Below are positions 7,995-8,690 of a stretch of DNA of 64,000 nt, in pieces. The notes beneath the pieces are model-generated. The model was not told where the DNA came from. It did not search any database and was given only the letters and a program-made list of their open reading frames with translations. Made by a program: the position numbers and the translations under genes. Each line of letters starts with the position of its first letter. The stretch's first letter is position 1. The stretch is taken from positions 448,032 to 512,031 of the forward strand of contig NW_019217797.1 of the NCBI RefSeq assembly GCF_002571385.2, given 5' to 3'. This DNA comes from Stylophora pistillata (Eukaryota).

Positions 7995-8690
7995 ATGATG
8001 GATTTGTGTGTCCGAATTTTGAACGACTGTGATGCTATAAATGCAGCCAGACGTCTTTTATACGAGGTGTATATTAGTGAGATGGGATGGGATTTTCGTG
8101 GTGATTGTCCGACAGGTTTTCGTATCGATAAAGACGACCAAAACAAACCCATCCTCTGCGATGCTTTTGACGACTCATCCGTTTGGTTTGGAGCGTACAA
8201 ACAAGATTGTTTGGTCGGAGTCACTCGTGCAGTCCAACGAAACAACTCATTAGGAAAGCTTGATCTCGAACTGTACCCAGCCAGCCAATTACCGTCCATG
8301 AAGAGAATTCTCCGCTCAAAGGCCAACCAACAGTTAGTGGAGGTGCAACGAGGAGCAGTAGCAAAGGACCACAGAGACACACAACCAAGCATAATACAGT
8401 TGCTTCTTCATTCCGCTTTTAGCTACGCGCTAGAGAAAGGACTCAATGTTGTTTGCCCAACAGTATTCCCCGTATTAGAAACATTATTCAGCCGAGCTGG
8501 AATGCGGTTGGTGGAGAGGACGTTTACATACGGAGAGGGCTGTGATGAATGGCCCACCTTTATCTTCTATTGCTCTTCAGACGACATGGCTCAAGTTGTA
8601 AACAAACTAAAGACAGCTGCAAAAAAAAGAAAGGCAAGCGTTTCAAAAGAAAGAGGGCACGCCAAGCGAGGAAGGTTTCTTGTGGTGTAA
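7995..8690 (+). CDS. GNAT-fold N-acyltransferase resembling acyl-homoserine-lactone synthases (LuxI/LasI) and N-acyl amino acid synthases (FeeM-like); 231 aa, no intron in the coding frame
   Basis: Longest ORF in the window. Motifs RRLLYEVYISEMGWDF, CDAFDD, WFGA, LVGVTRA, LDLELY, LVEVQRGAV...HR and LLLHSAFSYALEKG occur in the order expected for the family. AATAAA at 8808-8813 and 8941-8946. Confidence 0.75.
   Translation: MMDLCVRILNDCDAINAARRLLYEVYISEMGWDFRGDCPTGFRIDKDDQNKPILCDAFDDSSVWFGAYKQDCLVGVTRAVQRNNSLGKLDLELYPASQLPSMKRILRSKANQQLVEVQRGAVAKDHRDTQPSIIQLLLHSAFSYALEKGLNVVCPTVFPVLETLFSRAGMRLVERTFTYGEGCDEWPTFIFYCSSDDMAQVVNKLKTAAKKRKASVSKERGHAKRGRFLVV

Follow-up and report, generated by a model that had tools for sequence, protein, structure and literature searches.

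A single-exon gene of the FeeM/LuxI branch of GNAT acyltransferases in the stony coral Stylophora pistillata

N-acyl amides are potent signals, among them AHLs (N-acyl homoserine lactones), N-acyl amino acids and commensal-derived lipids that act on animal receptors. FeeM, the N-acyl tyrosine synthase of uncultured soil bacteria, has as its partner a dedicated acyl carrier protein whose gene adjoins its own in the fee cluster, and OlsB acts with OlsA in bacterial membrane-lipid synthesis. Animal N-acyl amides are known from unrelated enzymes or from the microbiota; the animal routes to N-acyl amino acids run through PM20D1, an M20 peptidase, and FAAH, an amidase, which work by the reverse reaction and without a thioester donor. 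Here we analyse a gene of the stony coral Stylophora pistillata whose protein we place in the GNAT superfamily, within its FeeM/LuxI branch, a known kind of enzyme in an unexpected host. It lies on the forward strand of a 64,000-nucleotide stretch of contig NW_019217797.1 (assembly GCF_002571385.2, positions 448,032 to 512,031), which we call the window and whose numbering is used throughout. We think it probable, from sequence and structure comparison, that this is a functional nuclear coral gene for a cytosolic GNAT of ~26 kDa from that branch, of ancient bacterial or phage origin, and that its product would be an N-acyl amide.

Family, fold and predicted active site

The gene is an unbroken open reading frame (ORF) of 231 codons with an ATG start in a single exon, just as an earlier note on this DNA, made from the letters alone, had claimed.

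7995-8690, plus strand: coding sequence (CDS) of the FeeM/LuxI-clade GNAT, a predicted N-acyltransferase; 231 amino acids, stop included

An AlphaFold2 model built on a 76-sequence alignment (pLDDT 91.4, pTM 0.88, with only the last ~20 residues disordered) was compared with the PDB by Foldseek. FeeM was the top match (E 6e-9), followed by the AHL synthases BjaI, LasI, RpaI, EsaI and TofI, with ordinary GNATs after them, so the comparison with LasI, EsaI and FeeM that the earlier note had proposed fell out in its favour. The predicted structure agrees both with the FeeM fold and with the extended GNAT fold of the AHL synthases, and a long N-terminal helix with a strand region is common specifically to the coral protein and the FeeM/LuxI enzymes. 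The nearest look-alikes in the ESM Atlas, found with a language model, all belong to bacterial FeeM or autoinducer-synthase clusters. Among PDB sequences a HMMER family profile reaches TofI (3p2f, E 8e-4) and LasI (E 1e-3); a single-sequence search of the same set gave no match.

Profile membership is narrower. The protein passes the threshold of Pfam Acetyltransf_5 (PF13444; 27.2 bits against a cut-off of 22.4) and fails that of Autoind_synth (PF00765; 13.3 bits against 24, with residues 118-172 matched only). When the 76 relatives were scanned with Pfam at E <= 0.01, Acetyltransf_5 was found in 57, FeeM in 54 (best E 1e-10) and Autoind_synth in two. NCBIfam yielded very weak OlsB-type matches only, the equivalogs NF052555 and NF052554 scoring 29.8 bits against a required 320 and 18.8 against 350. 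Two results speak against the placement near FeeM. The Pfam FeeM model itself (PF21926), the second-ranked match, scores 20.8 bits against a cut-off of 27 and so fails, with a match over residues 18-173 and profile positions 2-139 of 158, nearly the whole domain; and an eukaryote-rich profile, A4, run against PDB sequences retrieves generic GNATs, not LuxI or FeeM. With all of this considered, the coral protein is a member of the FeeM/LuxI branch, closer to FeeM, and formally a member of Acetyltransf_5 only. The LuxI/FeeM-like identity given in the earlier note is thus kept as to the branch, by Foldseek, but not as to the LuxI family, by the Autoind_synth scores of the protein and its relatives.

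The residues and segments discussed below are encoded at these positions.

8070-8090, plus strand: Y26 to W32 (Y-I-S-E-M-G-W) in helix 1, the predicted amine-substrate pocket; compare LasI Phe27/Trp33 and FeeM Tyr27/Trp32
8160-8171, plus strand: D56-A-F-D59, with D56 invariant in the family and D59 variable
8226-8228, plus strand: R78, invariant or nearly so, at the end of strand 72-80
8259-8276, plus strand: L-D-L-E-L-Y segment, ending in the family-invariant Y94; a helical insert between two strands in the model
8340-8351, plus strand: E116-V-Q-R119 on the central strand, the predicted catalytic pair; compare LasI Glu101/Arg104 and FeeM Glu94/Gln97
8628-8687, plus strand: basic C-terminal tail, residues 212-231, disordered (pLDDT 49-56), with K-K-R-K-A-S and then an end in (K/R)-F-L-V-V

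The translation bears out the by-eye positions given before, with L22, Y26, W32, D56, D59, R78, E116 and R119 all where they had been named. Across the 76-sequence alignment D56, Y94 and F177 are invariant, and conservation reaches 90% or more at Y26, W32, W64, R78, E116, R119 and Y179; in A4 both E116 and R119 are invariant, and Y94 is invariant in both alignments. Because it is conserved across the 76-sequence family, the residue pattern goes beyond chance. In the HMMER alignment to TofI, Y26 falls on Phe, W32 on Trp, D56 and D59 on D-x-x-D, R78 on the Arg of GCARL, and E116 and R119 on E-L-S-R. The eight residues of LuxI enzymes (R23, F27, W33, D44, D47, R70, E101 and R104 in LasI) are nevertheless not all present: five are identical and conserved, one is a conservative change (Y26), one is present in the coral protein but variable in the family (D59) and one is lost, position 22 being Leu, never Arg, across the whole family. 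The AHL-synthase signature that had been proposed therefore stands for Y26, W32, D56, R78, E116 and R119, which the family keeps, but fails at D59 and at the first Arg.

The active site of FeeM comprises Tyr27, Trp32, Glu94 and Gln97, and that of LasI Phe27, Trp33, Glu101 and Arg104 (PMC9654057, Table 1). The conserved Y26, W32 and E116 lie on elements that correspond to those of FeeM Tyr27, Trp32 and Glu94, a correspondence at the level of elements and not of superposed residues. Going by the aligned sequences, the predicted active site of the coral protein combines the Tyr of FeeM with the Arg of LuxI and is in that sense a hybrid.

The basic tail with its conserved F-L-V-V end occurs in stony corals and in one further relative (P0020, below), and is absent from the homologues of anemones, Hydractinia and Rhopilema. 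Its K-K-R-K-A-S motif resembles a nuclear localisation signal or an R-K-x-S kinase site. Nuclear targeting, membrane targeting or phosphorylation would be guesses at its role.

Transcription, selection and genomic setting

In five RNA-seq runs made from poly(A)-selected RNA and labelled 'coral metagenome', 78-91% of the sampled words of the locus are present, and RNA contigs from four of these runs were placed on window positions 5500-11000. They define the following features.

7905-9077, plus strand: minimal mRNA, unspliced, with a 5′ untranslated region of ~90 nucleotides (nt) and a 3′ untranslated region of 387 nt
9047-9052, plus strand: polyadenylation signal AATAAA, 25 nt before the observed poly(A) site

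One RNA contig of 1218 nt (runs X9/X10) spans 7905-9077 in one piece. A coral protein among the relatives, P0001, comes from a 1218-nt contig too, probably the identical one. At 9077 the RNA contig ends in nine A's followed by Illumina adapter; the A-run is non-templated, since the genome reads TTCCCG there. No splice joints were seen over the acyltransferase locus in the RNA contigs. In two runs a contig starts further upstream, at 7652, so that 7905 is a minimal 5′ end. RNA depth over 9548-11000 is zero in four of four runs, a silent control against genomic DNA carry-over. The acyltransferase mRNA is eukaryote-style and intronless, and it is not bacterial contamination. The earlier note had named poly(A) transcription as a check on its reading, and the contig with its non-templated tail after AATAAA supplies it. 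Minus-strand ORFs at 7919-8392 and 7505-7891, around the gene, are without support.

Purifying selection, another such check, was also detected. In a CDS alignment of the window gene, its Porites counterpart and that of a third coral (locus L012), a hand count of invariant columns gave 170/231 (74%) at first, 183/231 (79%) at second and 75/231 (32%) at third codon positions, and all indels among the three are of whole codons. We take this as purifying selection because variation at third positions is about threefold more frequent than at the first two.

The 398-Mb host genome has one copy of the gene, and a profile search of that genome found no paralogue, just weak motif-level matches to ordinary GNATs. 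On another contig (C231, ~119,000-224,000) at least six intronless ORFs of 236-260 amino acids match GNAT motif-A only and weakly (E 8e-4 to 0.05); they are apparently common GNAT genes arrayed in tandem, with no relation to the acyltransferase. The GC content of the acyltransferase gene, 0.44-0.46, is inside the local range. Its contig is longer than 500 kb, the window reaching base 512,031, and also carries homeobox genes and host repeats. The neighbours of the gene in the window are these.

13243-14166, plus strand: Anthox1a-like gene, with exon 1 at 13243-13647 and the homeobox at ~13990-14166
3239-3511, minus strand: exon 1 of a second homeobox-type gene, encoding an eh1-like motif plus an FPWM hexapeptide (from the ORF list), transcribed away from the acyltransferase
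5500-6525, no strand assigned: dispersed host repeat of ~1.03 kb, 1.5 kb upstream of the acyltransferase

The Anthox1a-like gene starts 4.55 kb downstream of the acyltransferase ORF on the same strand, in agreement with the co-oriented Anthox1a reported earlier at about 4.5 kb. Its WFQNRR codons lie at 14125-14141, and further homeoboxes were found in the window at 24938 and 51616. The second homeobox-type gene is probably, by inference, an Anthox9-like partner of Anthox1a. No homeobox for it was found in the window, where WFQNRR codons occur solely at 14125, 24938 and 51616; exon 2 of this gene could be hidden in the run of N's near 1500-1650 or fall outside the window, past its start.

The host repeats that had been claimed around the gene are represented by the element at 5500-6525, for which the coral's own genome gave at least 67 matches (391 candidates). 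Many copies are 96-100% identical, and the element appears recently active because many reach 99-100%. It contains an ORF at 5537-5968 on the minus strand and shows heavy depth in poly(A) RNA contigs, with many loose ends. Near several copies, at ~0.5 kb, a 44-bp piece of it (query 983-1027) recurs in inverted orientation, a hint that the full element is longer and has terminal inverted repeats.

In Porites lutea (two assemblies, L006 and L007) and in two further coral loci (L011 and L012), an Anthox1a-like gene lies upstream of the acyltransferase, at a distance of 7.8 kb (Porites) to ~8 kb and on the opposite strand; Porites and L011 have a second homeobox gene downstream. Read along the direction of Anthox1a, the order in the window and in these corals is the same: second homeobox gene, acyltransferase, Anthox1a. 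The acyltransferase points toward Anthox1a in the window and away from it in Porites, L011 and L012, and since orientation differs while gene order does not, we place a small local inversion in one lineage. The anthox9 and anthox1a genes of Nematostella are divergently paired, and the 3,865-nt spacer between them was reported to be gene-free (PMC1779807). No homeobox was found within 10 kb of the acyltransferase in Actinia, in P0020 or in a P0008-type coral. Given these absences and the empty Nematostella spacer, the position between homeobox genes looks like a feature of stony corals and not the original site of arrival.

Relatives and origin

An exhaustive phmmer search of 1.84 billion representatives returned 237 hits. 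Orthologues in stony corals are many, with 63-99% identity, the named ones coming from Montipora foliosa, Porites lutea and Oculina patagonica. More distant is P0020 (48% identity), on a eukaryote-type contig of 588 kb. Outside the corals, the anemone Actinia tenebrosa has a single-exon homologue (32% identity), the scyphozoan Rhopilema esculentum has one with 33% identity over 215 residues, and in the hydrozoan Hydractinia symbiolongicarpus the gene for P0081 is spliced, since its 1822 bp encode just 234 amino acids. From two further profile searches came a small set of sequences that lacked known relatives and added just two taxa, Rhopilema and a second anemone. Four other relatives (P0031, P0033, P0049 and P0071) have garbled N-termini and resemble the Rhopilema protein, and this group probably consists of intron-bearing medusozoan genes that prokaryotic gene finders have mis-called. 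The first exon of one of them, the jellyfish-type P0031 (L005, 8001-8585), was not found in the ORF listing within 2.5 kb upstream; the copy may be truncated, or the intron may be longer.

In Montipora, Porites, Actinia, Hydractinia and Rhopilema the protein is annotated as 'uncharacterized protein' only. No paper on a FeeM/LuxI-like enzyme encoded by a cnidarian host came up in full-text literature searches, nor, in the literature searched, a description of a FeeM/LuxI-type GNAT in any animal; the text of a 2016 survey of horizontal gene transfer in corals does not mention an acetyl- or acyltransferase.

Where the context of non-cnidarian relatives can be read it is prokaryotic or phage-like. 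One relative lies on a dense bacterial-type contig beside nitroreductase and heparinase-like genes and falls near the cnidarian clade in the tree described below; another is on a separate dense bacterial contig. P0176 (L026; GCA_040384185.1, contig JAWVGY010023971.1, 156-740), a FeeM-like homologue, also falls near the cnidarian clade. Its 3-kb contig is tightly packed with overlapping small ORFs, one encoding an MPTase-PolyVal domain protein, and looks like a phage or other mobile element. A search with a three-sequence alignment gave four loci, all in metagenome-assembled genomes (MAGs) of Gammaproteobacteria. These MAGs (1.8-2.7 Mb) carry the domain patchily, with matches in 12 of 61 genomes. 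In them N-terminal fusions of the domain to PAS, HisKA/HATPase and, in some cases, receiver domains are frequent, and two or three paralogues occur in tandem (P0035, P0039, P0041, P0046 and others; G003:C9:5600-7442; L013-L016). Such a union of a putative signal synthase with a sensor kinase is unusual and could merit separate attention.

A quick maximum likelihood tree of 148 sequences (LG+G4, midpoint-rooted only) joins the anthozoans in one clade (SH-aLRT 95) and these with the jellyfish-type group and Hydractinia in a larger one (SH-aLRT 93). Next outside this cnidarian clade are a sequence from the foraminiferan Bolivina, one from a bacterial-type contig and one from a phage-like contig. 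Because the homologues in anemones, a hydrozoan (with introns) and a scyphozoan form one clade with those of corals, the gene is an old, cnidarian-wide one and not a recent or coral-specific acquisition. A horizontally acquired gene had been proposed before, and the prokaryotic or phage-like relatives support that part; the gene is, however, neither recent nor restricted to corals. The earlier note had also held that widespread, vertically inherited animal orthologues would tell against transfer. Such orthologues do exist within Cnidaria, but not beyond it among the hits identified.

On balance we consider it fairly likely that the gene was acquired once, from a bacterium or phage, before crown Cnidaria. 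Vertical descent would have followed, with introns gained in medusozoans while anthozoan copies stayed intronless, and with a relocation next to Anthox1a in stony corals.

Other observations sit less well with that history. The backbone of the tree is weak, many forks and the sister group of the cnidarians are unresolved, and most non-cnidarian relatives are unnamed metagenomic sequences. The Bolivina homologue makes an older eukaryotic history possible. No non-cnidarian animal occurs among the named hits, a result that covers protein-database hits only, most of them nameless. The same observations lend themselves to a different account, in which cnidarians and some protists retained a GNAT subfamily of old eukaryotic or metazoan descent that other lineages lost, with bacteria and phages as distant branches or recipients. 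A cnidarian-wide gene in one clade, introns in the medusozoan copies, a foraminiferan homologue in the wider neighbourhood and an unrooted, poorly resolved tree all fit this account. We nonetheless hold it to be unlikely, if a serious competitor. Members of the neighbouring clades sit on bacterial-type or phage-like contigs where the context is readable, the family and its FeeM/LuxI relatives are overwhelmingly bacterial, and the anthozoan copies are intronless. Nor is there a bilaterian, sponge or fungal protein among the 30 clusters checked by name, which were drawn from the best 150 of the 237 hits.

Bacterial contamination or a chimeric assembly join, which an intronless gene with prokaryotic best relatives outside the cnidarians might suggest and which the earlier note had listed as a way to fail, has a negligible probability and was rejected, since four independent coral contigs show the gene beside homeobox genes, and since in the window it is flanked by a repeat that the host genome contains dozens of times, matches the local GC range on a contig of more than 500 kb and yields an mRNA with an AATAAA signal and a poly(A) tail. 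The single prokaryotic acquisition that we favour is accompanied by what a transferred gene should show, integration in the host genome (single copy, amid host repeats, in conserved synteny) and expression from it as polyadenylated mRNA.

Predicted function and comparison with known systems

By analogy with the FeeM/LuxI enzymes, a fatty acyl thioester would be bound in the GNAT cleft, and its acyl group would pass to the amino group of a small molecule that helix 1 (Y26, W32), D56, R78 and R119 hold in place, the base being E116 of the central strand. The Arg residues point to a carboxylate on that molecule, which would make it an amino acid or something closely derived from one, and the product would be an N-acyl amino acid or a similar lipoamide. 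In the animal cytosol free acyl-acyl carrier protein is unavailable, being confined to mitochondria, so acyl-coenzyme A (acyl-CoA) is the likelier donor; the CoA-dependent BjaI and RpaI match the coral model as well as the enzymes that depend on acyl carrier protein do. The family-wide absence of the first Arg fits the suggestion of the earlier note that the amine substrate may not be S-adenosylmethionine (SAM). It counts against this functional picture that substrate, acyl donor and product are all taken from remote homologues with 12-18% identity.

The fold might instead serve another acceptor (a polyamine, a biogenic amine, an OlsB-like lipid head-group or a protein) or belong to a non-catalytic binding protein. 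We give this a minor share of the probability. An OlsB-like acceptor is opposed by 29.8 bits against a cut-off of 320, and other acceptors in general by the N-terminal helix and strand region specific to FeeM/LuxI enzymes; loss of catalysis is opposed by putative catalytic Glu and Arg and pocket residues that are invariant across the family. A true LuxI-type AHL synthase, with which the animal would make AHLs from SAM and an acyl thioester in order to talk to or jam bacteria, shares most of the conserved residues and the extended fold, and is very improbable: Autoind_synth stays far below its cut-off and is touched by two of the 76 relatives, the first conserved Arg is Leu family-wide with D59 variable, and FeeM is the best structural match.

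A conserved, expressed N-acyl amide synthase of the FeeM/LuxI kind, as we prefer to read the protein, would give cnidarians their own route to N-acyl amide lipids. It would bear on control of the coral microbiome, on larval settlement cues and on innate defence, and would be a deep, phylum-wide case of a retained prokaryotic gene. The hypothesis is directly testable because Nematostella-type anemones and Hydractinia are genetically tractable. A bolder and rather doubtful extension is that cnidarians, with a host-encoded enzyme of the bacterial signal-synthase type dating from before corals, anemones and jellyfish split, make N-acyl amino acids or AHL-like compounds that act on bacterial quorum-sensing or membrane targets. 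If so, the animal itself would write in the chemical language of its microbiome. In stony corals, on the same doubtful reading, the gene might in addition share the regulatory landscape of the two divergent Hox-type genes that flank it.

Set beside the described systems, the coral protein is 17-18% identical to FeeM (PDB 2g0b). FeeM has Gln97 where the coral protein has R119, lacks the extra basic C-terminal tail and has an adjacent gene for its acyl carrier protein, a partner of which there is no sign near the coral gene. The LuxI AHL synthases (LasI, 1ro5; TofI, 3p2f; EsaI, 1kzf; and the CoA-dependent BjaI, 5w8a, and RpaI, 6wn0) carry the first Arg, which is Leu in the coral protein, and conserve the second Asp, whose coral equivalent D59 varies within its family. 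Like the OlsB-type ornithine and amino-acid N-acyltransferases the coral protein passes PF13444, but it falls far below the OlsB equivalog cut-offs, and nothing resembling the OlsB/OlsA membrane-lipid context was seen at the coral gene. With PM20D1 and FAAH it may share a class of product, bioactive N-acyl amino acids, while their fold and chemistry are unrelated to those of the coral protein.

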